From: Octopus sinensis
Taxonomy: Eukaryota
Length of the DNA stretch: 64,000 nucleotides
Assembly (NCBI RefSeq): GCF_006345805.1
Contig: NC_043018.1
Coordinates: 16,492,001-16,556,000, forward strand
Reading direction: 5' to 3'
Of this stretch, positions 1,692 to 47,609 are shown one piece after another. Position numbers and translations under genes: made by a program. Position 1 is the stretch's first letter. Every line of letters begins with the position of its first letter. Below the pieces are notes generated by a model. The model was not told the origin of the DNA and searched no databases. It saw only the letters and a list, made by a program, of their open reading frames with translations.

Positions 1692-1890
1692 GTCCTCCTC
1701 CCCTTGCTCAAAGACAGTTTGCGTCCACAATATGCCAGTCAGGCTTTGCTGCCTAGATATGAAATGTCATTGTGTGTCTCTAGCGAGTTGCAGGTGTGTT
1801 CCTATAAATATCACTCGTGGCACTCATAACAGTATACTCCAAAGTGTAATCCCTATTCTCGTTTTCCTTGTAAATTTACTAAATTATTGA
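1692..1890 (+). CDS. Gene 1, terminal (mature peptide) exon of a Cys-rich knottin/toxin-like precursor; upstream exons lie before the window
   Basis: Acceptor tgtatttacag|G; phase 2 as in paralogues. Translates SSSPCSKTVCVHNMPVRLCCLDMKCHCVSLASCRCVPINITRGTHNSILQSVIPILVFLVNLLNY* (8 Cys, hydrophobic tail). Confidence 0.85.
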
Positions 1891-3234
1891 CGTTCTGCTC
1901 TTTTGAATCTGGTGGATAAATGTCATAGGTCAGATTGTTTTTATAGAAGGAGAAAATCTACTACTTTTTCTATTTTGAAATTTAACCAATCGTCAAATCC
2001 TATGATAGTAGAAAACTATGAATAAACATCAAGAGACATAGTGAAATATAAAATATCAACGAGCAGAAGTTTGATTTTATAATTTATCCTGGAAAGAAAT
2101 TCACGTATATTGCACAAAAACTGAAATGGTAACAGAAATGAAAATCTGCAAATCATAACTTACAACTGTGACTTTTCTTACAAACCTAAATTAATACGAC
2201 GAATGTATTTAATATCTAATATCTTTATGCGATTATTCCGTCAAATTCTAATGAAATCTCAATTAAATAAATTTAACCAAGCATTGCAGAACACTTTGTG
2301 CTTCGTTTTTCACTGTTTGTAAGTTATTGAAGGGTATCAAAGTATTTATGGTTTGTTCTTCGCTGTGGTGTTTGCCTTTAAGTTATCGATATGAATGGTA
2401 AGAATTTACATTGCAGTGGTGTGCTATATTATTCTCCGAGTTCTATTTTATAAAATTTAAAAATGAAATAGGAAAAAAAAAAGATATAAGAAAGGAAAAT
2501 AGAGAAAAACAACTTAACCAGTAGAAATTGAGGAGAGGCGCGATTGATCACATAACCCAGAATGAATAGTGTGCTCAGCTGGGCCTCGCAGAAGTGACCC
2601 TGATGGCTTTGCCGCGAAGAACGTTGCGGCAGCCACTTCCTGAGGCTCATTAATCCAATGGGCCGCCTTCATCCCTCAGTTCGGAACGAAGTCCAAGAAC
2701 ACCTGAGGTCTCGACGTACCCGGTACAAACTGATAGTAGCCAGTGAGGACCAAATATTTCTTGAATGTTCTCTCGTCGTGATTATGGAAGGTGACACCCG
2801 CATTTGCAGCCGTTGCAGCAAGGTTAGTCCCTTGTCAAAAATATTTATTGATGTTGTGGTGATCGGACAGTCGTCGTCGAGAAGACAGGTGATTGAGTAA
2901 CGATCGATAGGTTACTGAGTTATGATCAATAAGTAATTGAGTTACTATCGATAGGTGTTTGAGTTACGATCATTTCCAGCTTCGTTTTGACTGATATAAT
3001 GTGCATAGTTTCCCAGTGTGCACACTGTCGTTCCATTCTTAAGAAGGCTGGACAGTAATTCGTTGCAAGGCGAGTGATCAGGATGTCTTCCTCATCTCCT
3101 TGACTGAGGTTGCAAAATTGAACCAAGTATGTCAAATAATTAAATACATACACACAAATATATGATTATGTGTTATTCATATAAATGCAGTTTACATATA
3201 AACAAAAAAGGTGTATCCATCATACGGATACCTG

Positions 3235-5200: not shown

Positions 5201-5467
5201 TAAGTATAACAGGACATAATAACAGGCGTCTTTTGACTGGAGACAAATTGGATTCAGCTGGCGTGTTGGGAATTTAGGCTTACGGCAGAGGGAAAGGGTG
5301 GTGCTGTGGCAGTGACCGTGGTCAAACGCAAAAGGGGAGAGAGAGAGTGTGTTGAAGAAGTCGTTCAAAATTGAGTGCAATGTGTACTTACATATAAGAG
5401 AACAAAGGGTACGTACGCCGCTCTACATATATATATATATATATGTATATGTATATGTATATATATG

Positions 5468-5508
<41 letters not shown>

Positions 5509-7243
5509 ATCATCTTCTATTTGTGAAAGGGATAAGTAATGGGTTGTGTAAAACATATGAACGAATGTGTGGCGATATTTGTCAAAACGTGCAGCTACAC
5601 TTCTCATCGAGAAAAATCTTCCTGCAATTACTCTTTCAAACAGTTGCTGCCATCTATCATGAAGATACTCTGCCCATTGCAATGCCAAGTGCAGGATATG
5701 AGATGTGTACTGTCAGCATATTTCGCGGAAGCCTTAAAACATCACAGAAAATGCTTTTTGGTATTTATTCAGGCTTCTATATTCTGAGTTCGAATCCCTG
5801 CAGTTCAACTGTTCTTTCCCTCCTTTTTGAGACGATAAATAAGGTTCCAATATTCCCCACCTCCTTTCCGATATTCGTAGAAACATGAGGTCTTTTAATT
5901 TACCTCCAGAAATTATGAAAGTTTGTAACACGATTTTTGACCTTAGGTAGCAACTGTTATTTCCTCTTTGCTTATCCCTAGAAACTATGCAAAATGAATA
6001 ATATTTCCTCCAGACATTCATGTCCTTAGATTGATTCAAACCCTAAAGATTCCCCTTTCAGGCTCTCCATCTACTCCTGCCAATTATCAGAGATGCACAT
6101 ATTGTCAGCCACTAAAGGACATCTCCAAGTGGTTAAGGTCAAGTAACTGGCGAACAAGTTTGTTGTATTGATCAGAATATTCGCTAAAACGATATTTATG
6201 CTTCAGCAAACCAGCCCTGTCGAAAATGTAATAGAAAATGGGTCACTTTGAAAGCATTGATGTCCAGGCACAAAAGCAAAGTGTGAAGGGAACAAGAGTC
6301 ATTTCCTTTAACTTCCAAATAGAATTAAACAGGAGATAACACTTACTATCCAAGGATAAAAGAAAGTGTCATCTATGTAACAGATAACCTCGCATTTCTT
6401 AGCCCGATTTCTGATTAAGTAATGATAATATTGTAAGCAAGCATCTTCAGTGGTATCTCAGTTCTCAATCTATCATGCAAAACTTATTGGAGATCTAATC
6501 TAAGCTGTGCTGCAAAGAGATGTTACGGCCCGACTTTGATTATTCTAATATTGGTAAATTAACATCTTGAAGAAATCTCTGAACTAACGTCTTGATACAC
6601 GTGTGCGGCTCTGATGTCTAAAGAAATAAAATCTACATTTACACGTTATATATGGAAAATTCCAGATTATATTTTAAATAAGAATGCCTATTTTTTTTAC
6701 AAAAGGTCGATTTTTTATAAGAATATATATTTTATTTTATATTAAAGCTCCGATACAAAATACAAAGCTGTCATAAATAAAATATTATTGGTTATAATGA
6801 CTTGGAGATCAGGGATAATCAGGATCTAAGCAGCAATTTGGACTTTGCACGTCTGAATGAGTCGTAAGTTGGTTTCTGGAAAAGAACTTAAAAATTGACT
6901 CCAATGAAGAACGTTGACATAACCGAAGATATAAATTCGATATAGTTTGAAATGATGTGTTCTAATTACTAATTCACACAGCTGGCGAAGTGCACTGCGG
7001 GTTAGTAAATATTGTATCTCATAACATTAATCAAATTGCTGATTTATACATACACACATACATACACACAAACACATACACATACAAATAGACGTACATA
7101 CATACACACATACACACATGCATACATACGTGCGTACATACATACATACATATATATATATATTATATATATATGTATATATATATATATATATGTATGT
7201 GGTTGTACGTATGTATACACACTCGCGCACGCACACACACACA

Positions 7244-7317
<74 letters not shown>

Positions 7318-8706
7318 GATGTGTGTTTGTGTGTGTAAAGAAGAAGAGAAAACACAGCGTGTACAAATTCAAGAATAGAATAGAAAACGACAGCTGGAGT
7401 CAGCAAAGTTTAACGGTGGTCAGTGTATAACTAGCTCTACACAACCCTCATCAACCAGTGTGAAATTTGCACCTGAGAAAGTCTACTGAGCTGTTTGTAA
7501 AAATACCGTTCGAATCAAACAAGTATGTAACATTTAAATTATTCTTTGCGACTGTATGTGATTAAGTAATAGCATTACACAGTTATGGTAATGATGATGG
7601 TGGTAGTGGCAGAGCTTAAACCGTTTGTTGCCTGTTTGCATGTGTACAATCCAAGATCTGCAAAAAGAGAGGATCACCGGAATGATTTTCTGATCTTCAC
7701 TTTATATCTCATCGATTGTATTTGATGAAAGGGAATCAGTTGACCCCTTCAGTTTTGGTTGAAGTCGGGCTTTTGTAAATTTTAATTAACGTAAATCGTT
7801 TGCTAAGAAACAAGTGAACCTATTTTGGCTGGATGTTTGTGTTATACATTTCTCATTATTTTACAAAAGATGTTCCCATTTTCTTACTTTATGTCAAAAT
7901 ATTCTCATCCAACAAACTGCTGATCTTTGCAACACTGGCCAACTGCTACCCTCCTTTCCATGGAACACTATTTCACCAAGATTAATATCCATGGGTTACT
8001 GTTTCTATTGAGTTGATTGACCATTATTCTTTGTTTTAAATCGTGTGAATATATTCTGGTTCTGGAGTAGCCTTGTCATAGCAATCAAAACAACGTGTTT
8101 TTCATAAAGCGTTTTTAGTTGGTGTATGTGTGTGTGTGTGTGGTGTGTGTGTGTGTATGCGTGTGTGTGTGCGTGCGTGTTTGGTAACAATGCTATATCT
8201 AAATGATGAATGTAGAATCTTGAAGATATTTTTTGACAGTTACTGAATACTGTCCCGTATTTAGAGCAAAGCCGACATGCATAACCTTCTTCTGATATGA
8301 GACTTATACCTGGGGTACTTCTTCATCGATTCTTCGCTTAGTTTTTCCTTGCCCAGATTAGTCATTGACATACCTCATAAATAAAAACAATAGCAAGACC
8401 ATTAATTAAAAGAGACACGTAATATGATGCTCTTCCAGAAAGTATTGTATTTATAAAGATATACATGATAAACATATTTCTGTGTGAGGATAACATGACA
8501 CATGTATTCAGCATCGAACAATTGTATTTAGTCATGTTTAGTCTCAGATTGTTACATACAAGTGCAACCTTTTATAAGTGAAATGTGCAGGAAAGTTTGA
8601 TTTGGGTTGAAGAAAACAGAGAAAATACATTTGACTGAGTGCATTTCACATACAAGATTCCACCAACTGCAAACTGACAAACATCTCATAATTGTTTTGA
8701 TTGCAG

Positions 8707-8747
8707 AAATAAAAATAATATAGCTATAGAAGCTAGATAAACTTGAA
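8707..8747 (+). other. Putative 41-nt non-coding (5' UTR) exon of gene 2
   Basis: CTGAC branch-like motif, then ttttgattgcag| ... aa|gtaaga. Same 41-nt spacing at 24346-24386 (+), 38488-38528 (-) and 59495-59535 (-). Confidence 0.4.
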
Positions 8748-9054
8748 GTAAGAATATTTCATTCACTGTGAACAACATGGGGAATATTTTGGACAAATGC
8801 TTCGAAGACGTCATCTTCTCCTAAATTATATATTCACATTTGAAAATAAATCTAGATTAGTACTATTGATGCAATTAAATTAGCCATATTACTTATTGTT
8901 TAAATGGTAAATCTTGGATTTTTAGTGAAATATATTTGAACAGCTAGAAGATAATTGTTACCTAAATTTCCAGCTGAAGACTTTTGCTTATTTTCTAAGA
9001 AAAATGCTTTTGTATTAATCACTCTCGTTATATGTGTCTATCATCAGGTGCGTG

Positions 9055-9118
9055 ATGAAAGGCATCATTGTCCTATTGTTTTGTGTATTCATTTCACACA
9101 CCTTCTCGGATAAACAAG
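9055..9118 (+). CDS. Gene 2, signal-peptide exon
   Basis: Acceptor catcag|gtgcgtgATG, donor caag|gtaagt. MKGIIVLLFCVFISHTFSDKQ plus 1 nt (phase 1). Confidence 0.88.
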
Positions 9119-9876
9119 GTAAGTAGAATTAGAAATTTCTTTTATTTTATAGCAATCCGAAACGTAGTAGGAGAAAAGGCGGAAAATAGAAGGGCGGGAA
9201 GGAGGAAAATGAATAACGTTACTTTAACGGTCTTTCGGGTGTACCCAATTTATATGCAATTAAAGCCTTTAAATAAATAACTCTATTTATCAAAACTACC
9301 CATAAACCAAATATACGGAGTTAAGATTCTTCTATATAATATATAACATTTAATTAACAATATGAATGATACAAATCGGGAAGGATTCTAGTGGTGTGGT
9401 CTCATCTCTTACTCCTGTATTTGATTCAGAACGTAAACACGAATGAAGGACACTAAGCACATTGCTCGTCGAGCTAACCATTCTGCCAGCTCTCCGCCGC
9501 CGCCCTTAGAATTCTTAATTATTAAACTAATAACAGAAGAGATTCAGCGAATGCTGTATATATAATTTTTCACGTGTATTTTGTTTGTCATCTTGTCATT
9601 CCTTTTTATTGGTCCTTTGGTTTTTTTATCTCCTTTTATGTATTAAAAACATCCATCACTACAGTGATGAGCCATATTTAAGTGTATGAGTGAGGAACTT
9701 CGAGTTCCAGTCTTCATGATCCTGCACCTTGTTTCAGATCGTCTTACCATAAATACGTTATCCTCCATTCAATGAATTACCTGTTGAGTGATGCATGGGT
9801 ATTTTGTGTATTTCTACACGAAACTTTGGTAAATGGACTTCTAATGCTTCCATATGTATTTTAATATTTCTTTCAG

Positions 9877-9937
9877 ATGTCGCTTCCGTCCGTCAAAAGA
9901 GAGGACATTCTGTAGTTTTGAGTAAATTGACTAAAAG
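9877..9937 (+). CDS. Gene 2, propeptide exon
   Basis: Acceptor tttctttcag|AT, donor aaaag|gtaaga. 61 nt, (D)VASVRQKRGHSVVLSKLTK(R); phases 1 and 2 match the flanking exons. Confidence 0.88.
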
Positions 9938-11271
9938 GTAAGATCTACATATCTACATAATCGAATTACTAGACAAGCGCCCTCTAGTGAGGTTTCATGG
10001 CATGTGTCTATAGTAGAGAGGTCATCTTTCTTGAGACTCATTCCTGATTGTAGTTTTGGTGTAAAAGAGAATATGAAACGGGAATATATCATGTGAGAGG
10101 ATAGGAGAAAATTTTGCATGGCAAAATGGGCAAGTGTCTCTTGCTTTTGCTTTTGCCGACCAAAGCCTTGTGAGTGGATTTGTTAGACGGAAACTGAAAG
10201 AAGCTCGTCGTATATATGTATTTATATATGTAGGTGTGTATATACGTTTGTGTGTCTATACCCCCACCCCAATATCGCTTGACAACCCATGCTCCAGTGT
10301 GTCCGTCCCCACAACTTATAGTTTCTGCAAAAGTCACCGATAGATTAAGTACTAGGCTTACAAAGAATAAATTTGCTTGACTAAAGGCGATGCTCCAGCA
10401 TGGCCACAGTCAAATGACTGAAACAAGCAAAAGAATAAAGAGTAAAAACTGAATAATATTCGTTTCTATTTTGCCTAGAAAATTCATCAACAATTCATTC
10501 AGCCATAGGTGCAAGCATGACTGTCTAGTTAACAAGTCCGAGCGTTCATTCCCTGAACATGTGTCTTCTGCTATACGCCCAGCGCGACCAGCGACCAATA
10601 CCATTGAATGAATGTGGTAGAGGAAAAAATTCTATTATCTATATCTATTATTGGGACCCGTCGAAATTCCACGGAATGGAAAAAGTTAAGAGGACATGTT
10701 TAAGAGAGAAAGAAGTATTCTTTAAATATTCTTGACGTTTGTCTGCATCCATTTCCTCACGTCATCGACTGCATTATTTTTACCTTTTTCCCCCTCTGAT
10801 CCGTGCTCCATGTCAGCTCATTCTTTCTCGAGCAGCTTGTATCTGTATTTCCTGTGAATCCAGAGTTGGCCTTTATAAACAAATATCAAATTTTAAGCGA
10901 GCACATAATAAATAACTACACTTATGCGATAAGCAATGGTCACTATGAGAAAAAAAATTAGTTCATAAAAATAGATACTTCTCACTATCAACACACCACC
11001 ACCACCACCACCACCATCACAGCAGCAGCATTCTCATTCTCTCTCTCTCTCTCTCCCTCTCTCTCTCTTCTCTCTTTCCCTCGTATTCTCTTTTTCTCTC
11101 GTTCTTCGCCTCTACTTTCAGCTCATCAATCAACGAATTTGGCTTAAGTACATTAATATTAATCACTTCTCTCTAATTCTTCTACTCTTTTTCTTCACTC
11201 CTCCCTCTCTCTCTCCTTATTAGTCTTACTCCACCTCGCACCCACTCCACCTTCAGCTTTCGAACTAATCT

Positions 11272-13477: not shown

Positions 13478-13586
13478 GTATGCTTGCTCAAATTCTTATT
13501 GTAAAGGAGCAATCCCAGTAGATAACTGCTGCTTAGGTCCGGACTGTTTTTGCATTTGGGACGCATCGGGTTGCTGGTGTACTTAA
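13478..13586 (+). CDS. Gene 2, mature-peptide exon (tail-less 35-aa 8-Cys peptide; 77-aa precursor)
   Basis: Acceptor tgtatttacag|G. YACSNSYCKGAIPVDNCCLGPDCFCIWDASGCWCT*; the paralogous tail frame continues after TAA to TGA at 13673. Confidence 0.88.
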
Positions 13587-14857
13587 CAAAATATCATCCG
13601 TGCCACTCTTAACAGTATACTCCAAAGCGTAATCCCTATTCTCGTTTTCCTTGTAAATTTACCAATTTATTGACGTTCTGCTCTTTTGAATCTTGTGGAA
13701 AAATGTCATAAGTTAGATTGTTTTTATAAAAGGAGAAAATCTACAACATTTTCAATTTTGAAATTTAACCAATCGTCAAATCCTTCTAATATATTCATGC
13801 TATCTAATATATTTATGCTATTAATCCGTCAAATTTTAATGAAATCTCAATTAAATAAATTTATTAAAGCATTACAAATACTTAGTGCTTCGTTTTTCAC
13901 TTTGCTATTTGTTTGTAAGTTATTGAACGGTCTTTGTGGTTTGTTCTTCGCTGTGGTACTTGCCTTTAAGTTATCGATATGAATGGTAAGAATTTACATT
14001 GCAGTGGTATGCTATATTATTGTAAAAACATATATTCTCCGAGTTCTATTTTACAAACTTTAAAGAAGAAATAGGAAAAAATAAGAGATAAGAAAGGAAA
14101 AGAGAGAAAAACAACTTAACCAGTAGAAATTGAGGGGAGGGACTATGGGTCACATAACCCAGAACGAATAGTGTGCTCAGCTGGGCTTCGCAGAAGTGAC
14201 CGTGATGGCGTTGCCGCGAAGAACGTTGCAGCAGCCACTTCCTGAGGTTCATTAATCCAATGGGCCGCCTTCATCCCTCAGTTTGGAATGAAGTCCAAGA
14301 ACACCTGAGGTCTCTACGTAACTGGTACAAACTGATAGTGGCCAGTGAGGACCAAATATTTCTTGAATGTTCTCTCCTCGTGATTATGGAAGGTGACACC
14401 CGGATTTGCAGCCGTTGCAGCAAGGTTGCTTCCTTGTCAAAAATATTTATTGATGTTGTGGTGTGTTTGATCGTACTGTCGTAGTCGAGTGGACAGGTGA
14501 TTGAGCTACGATCGATTGGTGATTGAGTTATGATCACTTCTAAATTCGTTTTGAAAGATATAATGTGTATAAGTTCCCACTGTGCACACTGCCGTTCCAT
14601 TCTTAAGAAGGCTGCACGTGATACGATGATGGGTTTTCAGTAATTTGTTGTCAGGCGAGCGATCCCGATGTCTTCCGCATTTTCTTGACTAAGGTTGAAA
14701 AATTGAACAAAGTATGTCAAATAATTAAATACATACACACAAAAATGTATAAATATATATATATATAAACTTAGATATGTTTTGACCAAAGATTGGTCCG
14801 GGCCATGTTTAATTTAATACCACAACATGATACGTACATATATATATATATATATTA

Positions 14858-14963: not shown

Positions 14964-17900
14964 TACCTGCACGCATCCCACAATAACATCAACACCACCA
15001 ATAGTAAATCGAAATTCAAAACACACACCAACTCGAGTCCCAAAATCTGCCGGTATTCCCAACGTGAGAGAACATGTCTGCTGAGTGACTGTCCCTTCAC
15101 TCATCTTCCAGGGACCCGACGCACAAACAGAAACGGGGCTTCAAGCCAACACACAAACCTGAATAAATAAAAATAGAAACACACCATGCTGCAGTAATGC
15201 TGGTCCAGTCTTTTCAGGAAGACACAAAAACAACAACAACAAAAGTGGAAACTACAACCCTATCCAACAGTGCAACCACACCTCCAGCCAAAAACTGCTC
15301 CCTAAGCAGGAAAATTCTTTTTTAGCCATGTTGAACATGGCAAAAGAAATACACAAAAACATTCTAGCCATCATTCTAGCCATTCTAGCCATCACCATCC
15401 TATGCTATTACCCCAGTGCACCAATTCCCCACATTGCTGCCACTAACACACACAAAAAATCCAAGCCCTCTGCAACAGTCAAAACTAGCCACTACACTAA
15501 CCGCCACATTCCTACTCAATGCACAAGGTGTCAGCCCTTCCATCAATGCACAAAAATGGAAGGTCCAATTCATTGAAGACTGGGTTGGTAACCATTCACA
15601 CCGCATCCCTTTCTTCATTCTCACTGAGACCCACCTTGACAACTCCCACTTGGAAGCCGAAGTGAGAGTGAAGAATTTCACAACCATCCGCGCGGATCGT
15701 ATCGGCAGGAGGAAGGGTGGAACTGCCATTTTCCTGCATGATTCATTTACGGCAGATGGAAATAGTATTCTCCAACGGCTACTGTGAATCAGTCACCGTG
15801 CACAACAAAGCCAATGACCTGACAGTATTTGGCTCTATAGGCCGCCCCAAACACCCTACTGTGCTTTAAAGAATGCCTCAACAGCATTAAGTGCTTTATT
15901 CAACAGTGCCATTCTAGCAACATACTCATGATGGGAGACTTCAATCTACCCTGTGTTGACTGGACTACAAACTGTTTGAAACCAAGCACTCCCGCCTCAA
16001 ACGCTGACAAAGAAGCAGCAGAGTCACTTTTCGACTTTACGAATGAGTTTTTCTTGTCCCAACTTGTCCTTGCACCAACAAGACATCAGAACATTTTGGA
16101 CCTAGTGTTTAGTAACCACACTAACACTATACATAACGTTACAGTGGAAAAAACCCTTCTTTCAGACCATGACATGGTTCTCTGTAACATGAAATTCTAC
16201 ACAGCCGAAAGCTAATCCTAGTGACCTTCCTCCAGCCCACCCATTTGACAACATGGATCTCCATAATGCCAACTGGGATGCAATCAGGAACGAGCTATCA
16301 CATGTTGACTGGTCCTTTACACATACACACATCTCCACCACCCATAAACATCTTGGCAGATCTTTGTAGACACCGTCACAGACTATGTGCAAAACACTCC
16401 CCACCAAGACCTGTGAACAAAAAGTGCAGAATCCCCCAAAACAGAAAAACCATTATCAGAAAAATAAAAAGAACAAACAAAAAAATTAACAAACTAATGT
16501 ACTGCCAACAGCAACACACATTCGACGGCTATCGCACTGCTTGAATCCAAACAATATAACCTCCAACAATGCATGAAGACCCTCATCAATAACCAAAGAT
16601 CAGCTGAGGAGAAGTGGGCCATTGAAAAAATCAAACTCAACCCCAAAGTGTTATTTTCATTTGTGAGGAAACGCAGGGTCACTGTCTCCACTGTAGGCCC
16701 TCTAATTGACGAAACTGCCAAATCCATGGCCGAGATACTGCAGAAACAATACTGCTCTGTTTTCAGCAATCCTGATATGGCCGATCTGGGCTGTATCAGT
16801 GATGTTAACCCCCAACACACTATATCGGACATAACGTTTAGTGCCCCTGATGTCTTAGCGGCGATAAACGAAATAAAACACAATTCAGCAGTAGGCCCCG
16901 ATAGGTTCCCTGCTTGTGTCCTGAAGGTGTGTCGACACCAACTTGCATCTCCCCTTGCTAATCTGTGGAGAAACTCACTGGATGCTGGCTATATTCCAAA
17001 AAACCTTCTGTCCCAGTCTGTTGTCCCAGTTTTCAAAAAGGGAAACAAGTCCCTTGCAGTGAATTACCGTCCGATCTCACTCACCTCTCATATCATCAAG
17101 GTATTTGAGAGGTTGGTGAGATCTCGAATAACTCAATTTCTGGAAAGCAACAGACGGCTGATCTCCAACCAACATGGGTTCCGTAATGGAAGGGACTGCC
17201 TAACGCAGCTCCTGCATCACTTTGAGGACATTTTGAGAGCTTTGGGAAAGGGCTCCAACACCGATGTCATCTACCTTGATTTCAGTAAGGCCTTCGACAG
17301 GGTCGATCACAAGATCCTATTGAAAAAACTATCCAACATTGGTGTCTCTGGAAAGTTACTGAAATGGATCAAGTGTTTCCTGACAGACAGATCTCAACAT
17401 GTTGTAGTTGAAGGGGTAAAATCAAGCCCAGCCAAAGTCAGTAGTGGCGTTCCGCAAGGCACTGTGCTGGGCCCACTTCTTTTCATCATTTACATTAATG
17501 ACATTAATGACATCATCAAGCACAGCAACATAAAAATCTTTGCAGATGACTCCAAGCTACAGAAGGTCATAAATGAGGCGAGTGACCGGACATGCCTTCA
17601 GTCAGATCTACTGGCTGTTATCCAATGGGCAGAAAAAAACAATATGCTGCTGAACGAGGATAAATTTGAGCTAATCCACTTTGGAAAAGAGGATGCCCTG
17701 AAACTCCCATACTCCCTTCCTTCAGGTGAAACTCTCGCGGCGTCCAACAACATCAGAGACTTGGGAGTAATTGTGGACAACAACGTAAGCTGGGCCACTC
17801 ATATAAACACCAAAGTTGACATGGCCCGCAGAATGTGTTCCTGGATTCTCAGAACTTTCCAGTCGAGAGATATCCACACCATTATCCTTCTCTTCTCCAC

Positions 17901-18518
17901 TTTTGCCCGACCCCACCTTGAATACTGTTGTCCACTGTGGTCTCCCCACACAATACAAGGTATCATAAAAGTTGAAGCACCTCAAAGGGCAATCACAAAA
18001 AAGATAGATGGCATGACAGGCCTCGACTATTGGGGTCGACTAGAAAAGCTAAAACTCTATTCTCTCCAACGTCGTCGTGAGCGCTACATCATCTGCATGA
18101 TGTGGAAAATATTCCATCAGCATTGCCCAAATGATGTTGGCATCACCTTTAAGGTACATCCAAGGCTTGGGCCCCGTGCCATCCGCCCAAAACAAAAATC
18201 GCACTCTCATCTCATAACAACAATACGGCACAATTATTTCACCTCAATTGGCCCCGCTCTCTTAACATTACACCAAAACACATTAAAACAGAAACTGACC
18301 CTATAGGGTTCAAGACGTCTTTGGACAGATTCCTTCAAGAAATCCCGGATAAACCCCCTACACCCGGATATGTCTCTGTAAACAATAACTCTCTACTTGA
18401 GTGGGCCATAGTGCCCAAATTCTGACTTGAAAGACTTCACCAGGTGGTGCTATTAAGTTAGACATGGCCTGGGCCAATAATGGCCGAAACCTATCAAAGT
18501 ATCAAAGTATCAAAGTAT
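14964..18518 (+). mobile_element. 5'-truncated, frameshifted non-LTR retrotransposon (CR1/L2/Jockey group): ORF1 C-terminal remnant, APE endonuclease and reverse transcriptase
   Basis: CCCH-like CRYSQRERTCLLSDCPFTH at 15048-15104. APE motifs LTETHL, GDFNLP, LDLVFSN, SDHDMV. RT motifs YRPISLTS, QHGFR, YLDFSKAFDRVDH, GVPQGTVLGPLLF, FADD. 3' tail (TATCAAAG)3 at 18492-18515. Confidence 0.92.
16573..18306 (+). CDS. LINE ORF2 reverse-transcriptase fragment (577 aa open stretch of a disrupted ORF2)
   Basis: Canonical non-LTR RT motifs. Upstream endonuclease is split across frames, so the element is probably inactive. Confidence 0.85.
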   Translation: MKTLINNQRSAEEKWAIEKIKLNPKVLFSFVRKRRVTVSTVGPLIDETAKSMAEILQKQYCSVFSNPDMADLGCISDVNPQHTISDITFSAPDVLAAINEIKHNSAVGPDRFPACVLKVCRHQLASPLANLWRNSLDAGYIPKNLLSQSVVPVFKKGNKSLAVNYRPISLTSHIIKVFERLVRSRITQFLESNRRLISNQHGFRNGRDCLTQLLHHFEDILRALGKGSNTDVIYLDFSKAFDRVDHKILLKKLSNIGVSGKLLKWIKCFLTDRSQHVVVEGVKSSPAKVSSGVPQGTVLGPLLFIIYINDINDIIKHSNIKIFADDSKLQKVINEASDRTCLQSDLLAVIQWAEKNNMLLNEDKFELIHFGKEDALKLPYSLPSGETLAASNNIRDLGVIVDNNVSWATHINTKVDMARRMCSWILRTFQSRDIHTIILLFSTFARPHLEYCCPLWSPHTIQGIIKVEAPQRAITKKIDGMTGLDYWGRLEKLKLYSLQRRRERYIICMMWKIFHQHCPNDVGITFKVHPRLGPRAIRPKQKSHSHLITTIRHNYFTSIGPALLTLHQNTLKQKLTL

Positions 18519-20705: not shown

Positions 20706-23700
20706 AATAATAATATTAACAGGACATAATAACAGGCGTCTTTTGATTGGAGACAAATTGAAGTCAGCTGGCGTGTTGGGAATTTAGGCTTACGGCAGAG
20801 GGTAGCATGACGCTGTGGCAGTGATCGTGGTCAAACGAAAAAGGGCTAACGGTAGTTCAACAGTCACGTGAGCAGAGAAGAGAGACAAAAAGAGGAACAA
20901 AGGAAACAAAGAGGGAGAGAAGAGAGAGCAAAAATTGGAAGAAAGGTATTAAGTAGGGGGAGAAGTGAAAGAGAGCGAGAGAGTGCGTAGACGGAAGAAT
21001 GAAGGAGTGGCGAGAAAAAGAGAGAGACTGTGACACAGTGGAGGGCAAAGTAAGAAAGGCAAAGAAATGTGAGAGAGGGGAAAGAGAGAGAGTGTTGAAG
21101 AAGTCGTTCAAAATTTAGTGCAATATGTGCTTACATATAAGAAAACAAAATGTAGTACGCAACACATATATATATGTGTGTGTTTGTGTGTCTGTTCGTG
21201 TGTATGTATCATCTTCTATTTGTGAAAGAGATAAGTAATGGGTTGAGTAAAACATATGAACAACTTTTTGGCGATATTTGTCAAAACATGTAGCTACACT
21301 TCTCATCGACAAAAATCTTACTGCAATTACTCTTTCAAACTGTTGCTTTCATCTATCATGAAGATACTCTGCCCATTGCAATGCCAAGTGCAGGATATGA
21401 GATGTGTACTGTCATCATATTTCGCGGAAGCCTTAAAAAGTACAGAAAATGCTTTTTGGTATATATTCAGGCTTCTATATTCTGAGTTCGAATCTCTGCA
21501 GTTCAACTGTTCTTTCCCTCCTTTTTGAGACGATAAATAAGGTTCCAATATTCCCCACCTCCTTTCCGATATTCGTAGAAACCTGAGGTCGTTTAATTAA
21601 CGTCCAGAATTTATGACAGTTTGTAACACGATTTTTGACCTTAGGTAGCAACTGTTATTTCCTCTTTGCTTATCCCTAGAAACTATGCGAAATGAATAAT
21701 ATTTTCTCCAGACATTCATGTCTTTACATTGATTCAAACCCCAACGATTCCCCTTTCAGGCTCTCCAACTTCTCGTGACCATTATCAGAGATGCAAGTAT
21801 TGCCAGCCACTAAAGGACATCTCCAAGTGGTTAAGGTCAAGTAATTGGCGAACAAATTTGTGGTATTGATCAGAATATTCGCTGATACGATATTTTTGCT
21901 TCAGCAAACCAGCCCCGAATCTTTGGAAAATGTAATAGAAAATGTGTCACTTTGAAAGCATTGATGTCCAGGCACAAAAGCAAAGTGTGAAGGGAACAGG
22001 AGTAATTTCCTTTAACTTCCAAATAGAAGTAAACAGGAGATAACACTTACTATACAACGATAAAATAAAGAATAAGAATTCAATTTAAAGTGTCATCTAT
22101 GTCACAGATAACCCCGCCTTTCTTAGCTCGAGATCTGATTAACTACTGATTATATTGTAAGCAAGTATCTTCATTGGTATCTCAGCTTTCAATCTATCAT
22201 GCAAAACTTATTGGAGATTTAATCTAAGCTGTGCTGCAAAGAGATGTTACGGCCCGACTTTGATTATTCTAATATCGGTAAATTAACGTCTTTAAGAAAT
22301 CTCTAAACTAACTTCTTGATACATGTATGCAGCTCTGACGTCTAAAGAAATAAAATTCTACATTTACACGTCATATGAGAAAAATTCCAGATTATATTAT
22401 AAAAAAGAATGCCTATTTTTTTTACATAAGAGTATATATTTTACTTCATATTAAATCCCTGATACAAAATATAAAGCGGTCATAAATAAAATATTATTGG
22501 TTATAAAGACTTGGAGATCAGGGATAATCAGGATCTAAGCAACAATTTGGACTTTGCACATCTGAATCAGTCGTAAGTTGGTTCGGAAAAAGAACTTAAA
22601 AATTGTCTCCAATGAAGAAAGTTGACATAACCGAAGATATAAATTTCGAGATAGTTTGAAATGATGTTTTCTAATTACTAATTCACACAGCTGGACGAAG
22701 TGCACGGCGGGTTGGTAAGTATAGTATCTCATAACATAAATCAAATTGCTGATGCTTATACATACACACATTCATACACACATACATACACACATACACA
22801 CATACACACATACATACACACATACATACATACGTACGTACGTACATATATACATACATATATACCTCTATACATACATATATATATTTATATACATATA
22901 TGTATGTGGTTGTATGTATGTATACACACACACACGCACGCACACACACATATATATATTTATATAGGTGTGTGTGTGTGTGTGTTTGTAAAGAAGAAGA
23001 GAAAACACAGCGTGTGCAAATTCAAGAATAGAAAAGAAAACGACAGCTGGAGCAAAAAAAGTTTAACGGTGTTCAATGAATAACTAGCACTACACAACCC
23101 TCATCAACCACTTTGAACTTTGCACAAGAGAAAGTCTACTGAGCTGTTTGTAAAATACCGTTCGAATCTAATAAGTATGTACACATTTAAATCATTCTTT
23201 GCGACTGTATGTGATTAAGTAATAGCATTACACAGTTATGGTAATGATGATGGTGGTAGTGGCAGAGCTTAAACCGTTTGTTGCCTGTTTGTATGTGAAC
23301 AATCCAAGATCTGCAAAGAGAGAGGATAACCGGAATGATTTTCTGATCTTCACTTTATATCTCATCGATTGTATTTGATGAAAGGGAATCAGTTGACCCC
23401 TTAAGTTTTGAATGGATTCGAGCTTTTGTAAATTTTGTTTTTTAATTAACGTAAATCGTTTGCTAAGAAACAAGTGAAGCTATTTTGGCTGGATGTTTGT
23501 GTTATACATTTCTCATTATTTTACGAAAGATTTTCCCATTTTCTTACTTTATGTTAAAACATTCTCATCCAACAAACTGCTGATCTTTGCAACACTGGCC
23601 AACTGCTTCCCTCTTTTCCATAGAACACTAGTTGACCAAATTTGCTATCCCTGTGTTGCTGTTTGTATTGAGTTGATTGACCATTATTCTTTGTTTTAAA

Positions 23701-24693
23701 TCGTGTAAATATATTCTGGTTCTGGAGTAGCTTTTTCATAGTAGTCAAAACAATGTGTTTTTAATATAGCGTTTTAGTTGGCGTGTGTGTGTGTGTGTGT
23801 GTTTCTGTGTGTCTGTGTGTGTCTGTGTCTGTGTTGTGTCCGTGCGTGAGTGTTTGGTAACAATGCTATATCTAAATGATGAATGTAGAATCTTGATGAT
23901 ATTTTTTGACAGTTACTGAATACTGTCCCGTATTTAGAGCAAAGCCGACATGCATAACCTCATTCTGATATGAGGCGTATGCCTGGAGTACTTCTTCATC
24001 GATTCTTCGCTCAGTTTTTCCTTGCCCAAATTAGTAAGACAATTAATTAAAAGCAACACGTAATATGATGTTCTTCCAGAAAGTATTGTATTTAAAAAGA
24101 TAACGATAAACATGTTTCTGTGTGGGGATAACACGACACATGTATTCAGCATCAGGTAATTGTATTTAGTCAGGTATAGTCTTAGATTGTTAGTTACCAA
24201 TGCAATAGTTTATACAGTGAAATGTGCAGGAAAGTTTGATTTGTGTTGCAGAAAACAGTGAAAATACATTTGACTGAGTGCATTTCACATACAAGATTCC
24301 ACCAACTGCAAACTGACAAACATCTCATAATTGTTTTGATTACAGAAATAAAAATAATATAGCTATAGAAGCTAGATATACTTCAAGTAAGAATATTTCA
24401 TTCACTGTTAACAATATGGGGAATATTTATGGACAAATTCTTCGAAGACGTCCTCTTCTCCGAAATTATATATTCACATTTGTAATAAAATCTAGATTAG
24501 TACTATTGATGAGATTAAATTAGCCATATTACTTATTGTTTAAATGGTAAATCTTGGCTTTTTAGTGAAATATATTTGAACAGCTAAAAGATAACTGTTA
24601 CCTAAATTTCAGCTGTAGACTTTTGCTTATTTTCTAAGAAAAAATCTTTTGTATTAATCACTCTCGTTATATGCGTCTATCATCAGGTGCGTG

Positions 24694-24757
24694 ATGAAAG
24701 GTATCAGTGTCCTACTGTTTTGTGTATTCATTTCATACACCTTCTCGGAAAAACAAG
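24694..24757 (+). CDS. Gene 3, signal-peptide exon
   Basis: catcag|gtgcgtgATG ... caag|gtaagt. MKGISVLLFCVFISYTFSEKQ. Confidence 0.88.
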
Positions 24758-25514
24758 GTAAGTAGAATTAGTAATTTCTTTTATTTTATAGTAATCCGAA
24801 AAGTAGTGGGAGAAAAGGCGCAAAATAGAAGGGCGGGAATGAGGAAAATGAATAAAGTTACCTTACTGGTCTTTCGGGTGTACCCCATTTATATGCAATT
24901 ACAGCTTTTAAATAAATAACTCTATTTATCAAAACTACCCATTGACCAAGTATACGGAATTAAGATTCTTCTATATAATATATAACATTCAATTAACAAT
25001 ATGACTGATACAAATCGGGAAGGATTCAAGTGGTGTGCTCTCATCTCTTACTCCTGTATTTGATTCAGAACGTAAACACGAACGAAAGGACACTAAACAC
25101 CTTGCTCGTCCAGCTAACCATTCTGCCAGCTCTCCGCCGCCTCCCTTAGAATTCTTTATTATTAAAATAATTACAGAATTAACAAGTGCTGTATATATAA
25201 TGTTTCACGTGTCTTTTCTTTTTTGTTTTTGTTATTCCTTTTTATTACTCCCTTGGGTCTTTTTTATCTCCTTTTATGTATTAAAAACATCCATCACTAC
25301 AGTGATGAGCCATAATTAAGTGTAGGAGTGAGGAACTTCGAGTTCCAGTCTTCATGATCCTGCATCTTGTTTCAGATCGTCTTACCATAAATACGTTATC
25401 CTCCATTCAATGAATTACCTGTTGAGTGATGCATGGGTAATTTGTGTATTTCTACACGAAACTTTGTTAAATAGACTTCTAATGCTTCCATATGTATTTC
25501 AATATTTCTTTCAG

Positions 25515-25575
25515 ATGTCGCTTCCATTCGTCAACAGAGAGGAGCTTCTGTAGGTTTGAGTAATATGACTAAAAG
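25515..25575 (+). CDS. Gene 3, propeptide exon
   Basis: tttcag|AT ... aaaag|gtaaga. (D)VASIRQQRGASVGLSNMTK(R). Confidence 0.88.
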
Positions 25576-27024
25576 GTAAGATCTTCAAATCTACATAATC
25601 GAATTAATAGACAAGCGCCCTCTAGTAATTTTTCATAGCTTGTGTCTAAAGTAGAGAGGTCATCAATAATGGCGCAGTTCCTTTCTTGATACTCATTCCT
25701 GATTGTAGTTTTGACGTAAAAGAGAATATGAAACGTGAATATATCAAGTGAGATGATAGGAGAAAATTTTCACGAGTAATATAGGCGTAGGAATGGCTGT
25801 GTGTTAAGTAGCTTGCTTACCAAACACATGGTTCCGGGTGCGTTTTTTCTATGAATATCCCTACTTTTTACGATTTTTTGACTGCCGTGTCGACATTTTT
25901 CCGTGTATTTCAACCAGAAAAATGTTCACTTAAAGAGAATAATAAACTACATAATACTAAATATTTACTTTTCAAAAATTGTAATTGTAAAGGGTCGAAA
26001 CAAAACCGAGCAACGCCGAGCGATACTGTTAGTTAATATATAATGGGCGAACGAACAAGTAGATTATCATACAGATATGTGTTTGCATGTGCGCGTATAT
26101 TTCCCGTTGTTGGATTGCACGATGTGTGATGTAATGTAGCGGTCACTTACACAAACACAAGAGAGGTTGATCTTCATATTCATATTACTATTTTCTTGCA
26201 GAGACAGATAAACCAAAGTAACCAGATTTGAAAATCATATAATGGTTAAGATTCCCATTTCAAAAGTTATTTTCAAGATGGTGGATTGTTTTGTCTCTTG
26301 TTTTGGTAACGTCGTTTTCATATCTTATTTAGGATGCGTAGAGAAGTACATAGGACAAACCACAATGACCGAAACAAAAGAACTGCAGGTTTGATTTCCC
26401 AGTTGCAGACGAGAAAATCTCGGGTAAAAATCTGCTGAGATTCATGAATCAAAATTTTAATTTATTAATTTATGTCAGAATAGTGACGATAAATTCCAAC
26501 ATAGAGGATCAATAAGACTTAGGCTGATTGAAGAATATCGGGGGGGGGGGGTTAAAAGTAGAGACACTGGCTGTGTGATAAGTAGCTTGCTTACCACAAC
26601 TATATGGATACGGGTTCAGTCCCACTGCGTGGCAACTTGGGCAAGTGACTCCTACTATAGCCACGGCCGACCAAAGACCTGTGAGTGGATTTGGTAGACG
26701 GAAACTGAAAGAAGCTCATCGTATATATGTATTTATATATGTAGATGTGTGTATAAGTTTGTGTGTCTGTTTGTCCCATCCTCCAATATCACTTGACAAC
26801 CGATGATGGTGTGTTTACGTCCCCACAACTTATAGGTTCGGGAAAAGAGACCGATTGAATAAGTACTTGGCTTACAAAGAATAAGGCCTAGGGTAGATTT
26901 GCTGGTCTAATGGCGGTACTCCAGCATGGCCACAGTCAAACGACTGAAACATTACCTTCGGTAATTGTGTTTTACTATAGCTTTGTTAGTGGATTTAGTA
27001 GACGGAAACAGAAAGAAGCTCGTC

Positions 27025-27971: not shown

Positions 27972-28167
27972 GTCCGCTTGCTCAAGGGGCTATTGTCAAA
28001 GATATATGCCAGCCATTCGCTGCTGCCCAGTTATGGTATGTATGTGCATTTGGCAAATATCGGGTTGCTGGTGTAGAACACAAGATAAAAGCCGCGCCAC
28101 TCATAATAGTATACTCCAAAGTGTAATCGCTATTCTCGTTTTCCTTGTAAATTTACCAATTTATTGA
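27972..28167 (+). CDS. Gene 3, mature-peptide exon with hydrophobic tail (106-aa precursor)
   Basis: tgcatttacag|G. SACSRGYCQRYMPAIRCCPVMVCMCIWQISGCWCRTQDKSRATHNSILQSVIAILVFLVNLPIY*. Confidence 0.88.
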
Positions 28168-34206: not shown

Positions 34207-34402
34207 TCAATAAATTGATAATCTTACAAGGAAAACGAGAATAGCGATTGTACTTTGGAGTATAGTGTTATGAGTGCCACGCGTGTTATTTTGTAAATGA
34301 CACCTGCAACCCGATGCTACCCAAAAGCATATACATTTCATACCTGGGCAGCAGGAAATGGCTGTCATATATTTTTGACATATACTCGTTGTGCAAGCGT
34401 AC
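34207..34402 (-). CDS. Gene 4, mature-peptide exon with hydrophobic tail (106-aa precursor)
   Basis: Minus-strand acceptor tgtatttacag|G. YACTTSICQKYMTAISCCPGMKCICFWVASGCRCHLQNNTRGTHNTILQSTIAILVFLVRLSIY*. Confidence 0.88.
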
Positions 34403-37340: not shown

Positions 37341-37401
37341 CTTTTAGTCGTATTACTCAAACCTACAGTATCTCCTGTATGTTGATGGACGGGAGCGACA
37401 T
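37341..37401 (-). CDS. Gene 4, propeptide exon
   Basis: tttcag|AT ... aaaag|gtaaga. (D)VAPVHQHTGDTVGLSNTTK(R). Confidence 0.87.
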
Positions 37402-38116: not shown

Positions 38117-38180
38117 CTTGTTTATCTGAGAAGGTGTATGAAATGAATACACAAAACAGTAGGACACTGATACCTTTCAT
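38117..38180 (-). CDS. Gene 4, signal-peptide exon
   Basis: catcag|gtgcgtgATG ... caag|gtaagt. MKGISVLLFCVFISYTFSDKQ. Confidence 0.88.
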
Positions 38181-47410: not shown

Positions 47411-47609
47411 TCAATAAATTGATAATTTTACAAGGAAAACGAGAATAGGGATTATACTTTGGCGTATGCTGTTATGAGTGCCACGCGTGTTATTTTCTTT
47501 AATGCACTTGCATATCGGTTTTTTCCCACAGCAGCAGGTACATACCAAACCTCGGCAGCAATCCTGGTTTGGATTAGAAGTGTAACACATATACCTTGAA
47601 CAAGATTCC
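47411..47609 (-). pseudogene. Gene 5, orphan mature-peptide exon (10 Cys) with intact frame; its own pro and signal exons are deleted. Pseudogene or alternative terminal exon of gene 6
   Basis: tgtatttacag|G then ESCSRYMCYTSNPNQDCCRGLVCTCCCGKKPICKCIKENNTRGTHNSIRQSIIPILVFLVKLSIY*. Upstream deletion junction at 50646-50650. Confidence 0.75.

Follow-up and report, generated by a model that had tools for sequence, protein, structure and literature searches.

Conotoxin superfamilies are encoded as multi-exon precursors, in which a conserved signal peptide and a propeptide running to a basic site are followed by a hypervariable last exon built on a cysteine framework. Their introns and untranslated regions are conserved, their genes are tandemly duplicated, and dN/dS exceeds 1 while the cysteines stay invariant. 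Mature two-domain spider toxins retain a helix that acts on membranes. To our knowledge, cystine-knot peptides are not a known feature of cephalopod secretions.

The stretch analyzed here, referred to as the window, comprises 64,000 nt of Octopus sinensis DNA and contains a gene family that evolves in the mode of cone-snail and spider toxins and whose precursors end in a hydrophobic tail, which is unusual for such peptides. We favor, with a probability of about 0.5, the reading that this tail is a translated, weakly constrained and dispensable C-terminal extension that is trimmed or tolerated. The segment would then be the translated 3′ end of the last exon in a tandemly duplicated, Octopus-specific family of secreted Cys-rich peptides, each precursor probably consisting of a signal peptide, a short propeptide to K-R, a knottin-like core of ~32 residues with eight cysteines, and a hydrophobic-ended tail of ~30 residues.

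A tandem family of Cys-rich precursors

A GC content of ~35%, long (TA)n tracts and the reverse transcriptase of a LINE mark the window as eukaryotic (Table 1). Much of its intergenic DNA consists of long (TA)n microsatellites and of repeated blocks that by eye resemble short interspersed repeats. On translation, positions 1798-1890 (+) give a 30-residue tail, VPINITRGTHNSILQSVIPILVFLVNLLNY, and its stop, straight after the last cysteine of an 8-Cys exon (gene 1). This exon begins at the acceptor ttacag^G (a caret marks a junction throughout) and codes for SSSPC...CRC, then VPINITRGTHNSILQSVIPILVFLVNLLNY, up to a TGA. When we searched its product against the window using tblastn, six paralogous copies were identified, three on each strand, and in five of these the 30-codon tail is open to the same TGA, as the sequence-only reading of this DNA had proposed. 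In gene 2, a TAA stands one codon past the last cysteine, where gene 4 has TTA. The N-x-T sequon that had been reported in genes 1 (NIT), 4, 5 and 6 (NNT) is indeed present there and absent from genes 2 and 3. The six copies are recent paralogs and are therefore not independent observations. A dispersed-repeat origin of the tail and untranslated region was rejected, since within the window this segment matched the six exon copies only.

The reconstructed genes have three coding exons: one for the signal peptide, one of 61 nt for the propeptide to K-R, and one that carries the Cys core, the tail and a 3′UTR of ~135 nt. Four of the six Cys exons are preceded, at a distance of 3-4 kb and in the correct orientation, by the signal exon (MKGISVLLFCVFISYTFSDKQ; donor AAG^GTAAGT). 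This signal exon codes for MKGISVLLFCVFISYTFS^DKQ, in which n-, h- and c-regions were recognized by inspection, and it was found in genes 2, 3, 4 and 6 and in all RefSeq relatives. Direct splicing of exon 1 to exon 3 was ruled out by their mismatched phases (1 and 2). A blind scan of the window for a middle exon was too noisy to locate one; exon 2 was located via the propeptides of the RefSeq relatives. Splicing at GT-AG sites gives precursors with a continuous frame, in which K-R (N-R in gene 6), a putative prohormone-convertase-type cleavage site, directly abuts the Cys core. In the four full genes, every splice site and reading frame is intact, and the window contains exons 1 and 2 four times and the last exon six times. 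Exons 1 and 2 of gene 1 would lie upstream, off the window. Five of the six copies have an AATAAA 133 nt past the stop, which indicates a short 3′UTR.

Exons 1 and 2 of genes 2, 3, 4 and 6 are borne on a ~4.7-kb block that occurs in four copies of 86-90% identity, and the array is a mix of direct and inverted duplications. The gene 5 unit has a deletion over the part of the block that would hold these two exons. The propeptides of genes 3, 4 and 6 contain an N-x-T (SNMT, SNTT and GNMT, respectively), those of gene 2 (SKLT) do not, and most O. bimaculoides relatives have one as well (SNVT, NNMT), so that the propeptide sequon is kept more widely than that of the tail.

Gene 5 may be an orphan exon or an alternative terminal exon of the gene 6 unit, on whose strand it lies, and one pair of signal and propeptide exons may serve several alternative terminal exons coding for mature peptides. 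Two models hint at such an arrangement: isoforms X2 and X3 of LOC128250541 share exons 1 and 2 and differ in the Cys core, and the P0004 model (locus L001) leaves out a mature exon that is intact, at 21,899-22,120.

Table 1 Positions of the features discussed (in the window, unless another locus is named)
Feature	Position	Strand	Description
Gene 1 last coding exon	1692..1890	+	8-Cys core, 30-codon tail 1798-1887, TGA 1888-1890; tblastn 1693-1887
Gene 1 3′UTR	1891..2026	+	To AATAAA 2021-2026; first ~50 nt are the best-conserved part of the last exon in the family
Conserved 3′UTR stretch	1891-1940		And homologous 48 nt past each stop, e.g. 28168-28215
Gene 2 exon 1	9055..9118	+	Signal peptide MKGIIVLLFCVFISHTFSDKQ, donor AAG^GTAAGT, phase 1
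Gene 2 exon 2	9877..9937	+	61-nt propeptide, phase 1 to 2; gives K of the K-R site
Gene 2 last coding exon	13478..13586	+	8-Cys core to ...CWCT, TAA 13584-13586; tail untranslated; tblastn 13479-13583
Gene 2 untranslated tail homolog	13587..13673	+	Last 19 codons 95% identical to gene 1
Reverse-transcriptase ORF	16573-18306	+	Intact, 577 aa, non-LTR retrotransposon (Pfam RVT_1, E = 2.7e-31)
Gene 3 exon 1	24694..24757	+	Signal peptide
Gene 3 exon 2	25515..25575	+	Propeptide
Gene 3 last coding exon	27972..28167	+	Tail 28075-28164 (RTQDKSRATHNSILQSVIAILVFLVNLPIY), without NxT sequon; tblastn 27973-28164
ORF of 330 aa	32029-33021	-	No Pfam match
Gene 4 last coding exon	34207..34402	-	Tail 34299-34210 (HLQNNTRGTHNTILQSTIAILVFLVRLSIY); tblastn 34401-34210
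Gene 4 exon 2	37341..37401	-	Propeptide
Gene 4 exon 1	38117..38180	-	Signal peptide
Gene 5 last-exon copy	47411..47609	-	10 Cys; tail 47503-47414; no own exon 1 or 2 in the window; tblastn 47608-47414
Gene 6 last coding exon	55001..55199	-	10 Cys; tail 55093-55004; tblastn 55198-55004
Gene 6 exon 2	58308..58368	-	Propeptide; N-R replaces K-R at the junction
Gene 6 exon 1	59126..59189	-	Signal peptide
Gene 6 with gene 5 last exon	59189-47411	-	Gene 5 last exon 7.4 kb downstream of that of gene 6
~4.7-kb repeated block	5333-10115, 21076-25770, 41766-37202, 62737-58109		Four copies
Locus L002, region bearing on a shared exon pair	17100-17990	-	

A profile search of 1.8 billion proteins using HMMER identified five full-length relatives, and a second, alignment-based search identified eight. 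All eight are RefSeq models of Octopus bimaculoides annotated as "uncharacterized protein", and they have the same architecture. Their loci (LOC128250513, 514, 516, 517, 536 and 541) are all on chromosome CM046622.1, at ~29.2 and 36.4 Mb, and the family thus comprises, besides the window, two clusters on a single chromosome of O. bimaculoides. The window is 77-87% identical to three O. bimaculoides loci, and therefore represents another place or a close relative. The O. bimaculoides sequences include a second subfamily, with tails of the form ...SSQNxIHxxNxGxLQTVIAFLIFLVNLPSY. Queried with just the product of the exon, a word-indexed protein search gave no match; Pfam gave none at E up to 10, and its precomputed annotation is "-" for all relatives. 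The sole match in a profile search of the PDB was a metallothionein (E = 0.85). With no paper in the literature searched, no Pfam family and no solved structure found, the family appears to be uncharacterized and, as far as sequence searches reach, restricted to Octopus. Some Gnomon isoforms of P0001/P0009/P0006 begin 22-34 residues upstream of the MKGISVLL... methionine (e.g. MRNDNIMAIIEYRLF...); these starts would bury the signal peptide and are probably mis-called or represent an untranslated leader.

The Cys core has the spacing C-x4-C-x8-CC-x4-CxC-x5/6-CxC, which contains the C-C-CC-C-C pattern of at least six cysteines in ~30-40 residues that marks a knottin. The eight cysteines are invariant in all six window copies and in 12 aligned family members. 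Genes 5 and 6 carry ten, two beyond the usual eight (C-T-C-C-C). We modeled the gene 4 exon product with AlphaFold using the 12-sequence family alignment, and obtained a model of moderate confidence (pLDDT of 66.5) in which residues 21-25 and 32-36 form a β-hairpin and the tail folds into one helix (residues 40-62). When the model was compared with the PDB using Foldseek, inhibitor cystine knot (ICK) peptides comprised 14 of the best 16 matches; none of these was significant (best E = 2.5), and the best ICK matches had TM-scores by target of 0.56-0.64 and an rmsd of 1.7-2.6 Å over 31-37 residues. The searches gave no sequence match to a curated knottin or toxin family. A knottin-like core, as assigned in the sequence-only reading, is plausible; a knotted fold would require disulfides I-IV, II-V and III-VI.

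Estimates of dN/dS for the Cys core were 1.8-3.4. The cores of genes 5 and 6 have six nonsynonymous differences and no synonymous one; every cysteine is kept, and the tails are identical. By these estimates the core is under diversifying selection, and such ratios combined with invariant cysteines indicate functional genes. The copies could instead be decaying pseudogenes or unexpressed exon relics, in which the tail would be meaningless. None of the window genes appeared in the protein databases that we searched, gene 5 is without its own exons 1 and 2, and locus L003 has a clearly broken copy. We consider this very improbable, because eight Cys codons are invariant in six copies despite a core identity of 62% and dN/dS above 1, the four full genes are intact in splice sites and frames, and the paralogs have RefSeq models with isoforms. 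The broken copy at locus L003, 12357-12500 (+), has an in-frame stop and has lost Cys (RRR-stop-CSGFTWNC...), and its tail is still recognizable (NLQNIIHVMNNGIIQTVVSILTSLLILY).

Conservation of the tail and of its flanks

Among the six window copies, identity is 93.5% in the upstream intron, 62% in the Cys core, 83.8% in the whole tail and 94.3% in the 115 nt past the stop. Around exon 1, identity is 95%. The tail itself is uneven, with 71% identity in its first 10 codons and 90.3% in its last 19. It appears conserved only by contrast with the core, which is hypervariable. This hypervariability reaches ~10 codons beyond the last cysteine, where the p-distance is 0.23 within and 0.44 between subfamilies, and then falls to 0.10 and 0.24, respectively. 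Between subfamilies, the C-terminal, hydrophobic half of the tail diverges by 23.6%, the first 48 nt of the 3′UTR by 15.0% and the next 27 nt by 20.9%; against the two most divergent copies, the corresponding values are 36.6% and 36.9%. Conservation thus continues over the stop codon without a break. In gene 2, the untranslated tail DNA is about as conserved as the translated tails.

By Nei-Gojobori estimates, the tail has a dN/dS of 1.2-1.6, and its hydrophobic half 1.6-3.3. Minimum changes at the first, second and third codon positions number 11, 12 and 7, with no third-position excess. The open reading frame was rejected as evidence of selection: of the 252 single substitutions that the tail allows, only 6 introduce a stop, and an open tail is therefore expected under neutrality and uninformative. 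When retention of hydrophobicity was compared with random mutation of the consensus, the difference was not significant (P = 0.07-0.28) in a comparison that was underpowered and leaned towards retention. As a peptide, the tail has no constraint detectable in these alignments.

The sequence-only reading had argued from conservation of the tail to function, and from function to a GPI signal. The alignments do not bear this out: the tail changes faster than the adjacent non-coding DNA, its dN/dS is at least 1, and one paralog is truncated. Judged at the sequence level, the tail is no better conserved than the untranslated DNA that adjoins it, and its conservation is not evidence for a GPI anchor. 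In families with a hypervariable core, any neighboring segment looks conserved, and comparison with adjacent non-coding DNA should precede an argument for function.

Seamless conservation over the stop, with 15% divergence in the first 48 nt of the 3′UTR vs 24% in the tail, would also be expected if the 3′ half of the tail, the stop and ~75 nt of 3′UTR formed a block conserved at the DNA or mRNA level, with the encoded peptide incidental. Such a block would be kept for mRNA processing, stability, localization or translational control, or by gene conversion. The lack of codon-position bias among tail changes and the equal conservation of the untranslated tail of gene 2 agree with this explanation. 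RNA structure was rejected as the cause of the nucleotide conservation, because RNAalifold across the tail and 3′UTR returned no conserved structure (-1 kcal/mol, no compensatory pairs). The conserved 3′UTR stretch matched no known element, and conserved flanks may simply be the product of recent duplication and focal positive selection; we regard a block of this kind as improbable. The stretch itself, the first ~48 nt of the 3′UTR (CGTTCTGCTCT..TGAATCTTGTGGATAAATGTCATA.GTCAGAT), is the best-conserved part of the last exon between subfamilies.

Several members lack a normal tail. In gene 2, the premature TAA stands ahead of it. Isoform X2 of LOC128250541 is spliced out of the tail at ACT^GTAAGC to an exon 550 nt downstream and has a hydrophilic end. 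In isoform X3 and the L002 genomic copy, a 1-nt deletion changes the terminus from ...NLPIY to ...LIDVLFL, and in P0005 and a neighboring pseudogene (L3_a), a 6-nt deletion leaves a "hydrophobic" stretch that is rich in Ser and Thr. The Cys core is intact in every one of these members except the pseudogene. We judge the tail to be probably dispensable because it is lost, frameshifted, shortened or spliced out where the Cys core is intact.

An in-tail splice donor was rejected as a family feature: GTAAGC occurs in the L002 copy only, its place in the window copies is taken by GTAATC, ACAATC or ATAATC, and the window has no counterpart of the downstream exon of isoform X2. Octopus mRNAs are heavily edited from A to I. 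The gene 2 stop is a UAA, and its editing to Trp is unlikely because both adenosines would need to be edited.

In this family, everything apart from the Cys core changes slowly, including the signal peptide, the exon-near introns, the tail and the 3′UTR. Under the reading that we favor, the tail would most likely be a pro-segment, either trimmed or tolerated, and activity would reside in the secreted Cys core with the few residues that follow it. The gene models, family membership, divergence pattern, dN/dS values and tail-less variants are observed, whereas secretion, K-R cleavage, tail removal and the role of the peptides are inferred. Several points weigh against this reading, among them the lean towards retained hydrophobicity noted above. 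The hydrophobic C-terminus is kept in 14 of ~16 members over ~24-37% nucleotide divergence. Because GPI and sorting segments are degenerate in sequence, a dN/dS of ~1 on ~30 codons is compatible with selection on physicochemical character. The non-coding flanks diverge by less than the dN of the tail, which could mean that the tail is translated and diversifying and is not irrelevant. Lastly, no endoprotease site is conserved at the boundary proposed for trimming.

The tail as a candidate GPI signal or propeptide

GPI signals comprise four regions: a linker of ~11 residues, small residues from ω-1 to ω+2, a spacer from ω+3 to ω+9, and, starting at ω+10, a hydrophobic tail (PMC2571997). We compared the tails with this layout using a template made by hand from that description, in place of a trained predictor. 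In a GPI-anchored product, the transamidase would cut a few residues past the last cysteine and leave a hypervariable knottin on the outer leaflet of the producing cell.

Part of the layout is present. The precursors have, by inspection, an N-terminal ER signal, and the hydrophobic extreme C-terminus, the polar stretch ahead of it (~6-7 residues) and the absence of anything cytoplasmic behind it, all noted in the sequence-only reading, are real. The ends also agree with a hydrophobic tail expected from about ω+10: over the last 20 residues, Kyte-Doolittle hydropathy averages 1.1-2.2 in 15 of 16 tails, with the alternatively spliced member as the exception (1.2-1.8 for the window tails). In the window subfamily, the ω region I/Q/E-[N/D]-I/N/K-T/S is a partial fit: the only fitting candidate is the N or D at position 4 past the last cysteine, which has T or S at ω+2 and 17 residues of tail from ω+10, a rough match to the published layout (PMC2571997). 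The tail is also predicted to be helical.

Other parts are absent. By the hand template, no ω position with small residues from ω-1 to ω+2 is common to the whole family; in the second subfamily, the homologous site either carries Ile at ω+2 (N-R-I, D-T-I, N-M-I) or is devoid of ω-type residues (T-M-I). An unstructured linker of ~11 residues has no room, as the candidates that fit ω+10 sit 1-6 residues past the last, disulfide-bonded cysteine, which itself falls within the β-strand at residues 32-36 in the gene 4 model. Among the 16 tails, the longest stretch that contains neither charged nor strongly polar residues is 10-13, and in the window tails it is at most 10; genes 4, 5 and 6 have an R or K inside the last 20 residues. 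Purifying selection on the tail is absent, its conservation is no better than that of the 3′UTR, and the core is intact in tail-less members. Propeptides ending in K-R, like the one here, are more typical of peptides of regulated secretion. Because the template was made by hand, these results weaken GPI anchoring and do not refute it; we consider it unlikely. If the tail did act as a GPI signal, this would be the first tethered knottin repertoire. A wider proposal, which we hold to be doubtful, is an Octopus-specific tandem repertoire of hypervariable knottins GPI-tethered to the cell that produces them, acting as prototoxin-like modulators or recognition tags, with soluble forms arising via the gene 2 stop or the splicing of LOC128250541 X2.

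The fall in hypervariability would also fit a mature C-terminus ~8-12 residues past the knot, produced from a functional C-terminal propeptide that is cut at a defined site (e.g. after T-R or near H-N-S^I). Before its removal, such a segment would act in sorting, ER/Golgi membrane association, folding or self-protection. At the hypervariability boundary lies N-[SG]-[IM]-x-Q-[ST]-V/L-I, the only tail motif common to both subfamilies, and the precursor already has a K-R propeptide site on its N-terminal side. No basic or otherwise recognizable cleavage motif is conserved at this boundary; the R-G of TR^G, like the NxT sequon, is confined to the window subfamily. The cut at TR^G that had been suggested earlier does not extend to the second subfamily. 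A C-terminal segment missing from the mature peptide, the second option of the sequence-only reading, is consistent with the reading that we prefer. With no purifying selection on the tail, with tail-less paralogs present and with no precedent in Pfam or the PDB, a functional propeptide is, in our assessment, distinctly unlikely.

Comparison with known systems

Like the GPI-tethered Ly6/uPAR proteins (lynx1, CD59 and Drosophila sleepless), the octopus peptides are small, disulfide-rich and predicted to enter the secretory pathway, with a hydrophobic C-terminus and no cytoplasmic domain; the sequence-only reading had drawn this functional analogy with modulators. Unlike them, they comprise a knot of ~35 residues and not a three-finger fold of ~70-90 residues. 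The Ly6/uPAR proteins also have small ω residues and an upstream linker, whereas the octopus ω position is weak or absent, unconserved and without a linker. Searches of Pfam and PDB profiles detected no homology between the two.

The two-domain spider toxins (CsTx-1 type and latartoxins) share with the octopus precursors a knottin followed by a predicted helix of ~30 residues. Their helices are cationic and amphipathic, in contrast to the octopus tail, which is nearly uncharged and has a plain apolar run (VIPILVFLV); no similarity was found between the two. Spider and other arthropod ICK peptides (C-C-CC-CxC-CxC) resemble the octopus core in Cys spacing, in the modeled β-hairpin core and in their top Foldseek ranks. 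They differ in being soluble and free of a hydrophobic tail, and the structural likeness is limited by a best E of 2.5 and the moderate pLDDT.

Conotoxin superfamilies differ from the octopus family in lineage, the latter being cephalopod, and a sequence relationship between them was undetected, with Pfam empty and database matches from octopus only. The octopus precursors, unlike conotoxins, carry a hydrophobic C-terminal extension of ~30 residues, and on the gene models a single signal exon may be followed by alternative terminal mature exons. In identities, gene models and dN/dS, the octopus family nonetheless has all of the conotoxin traits set out above, and its conserved flanks, hypervariable core and six copies within 64 kb indicate a conotoxin-like mode of evolution.
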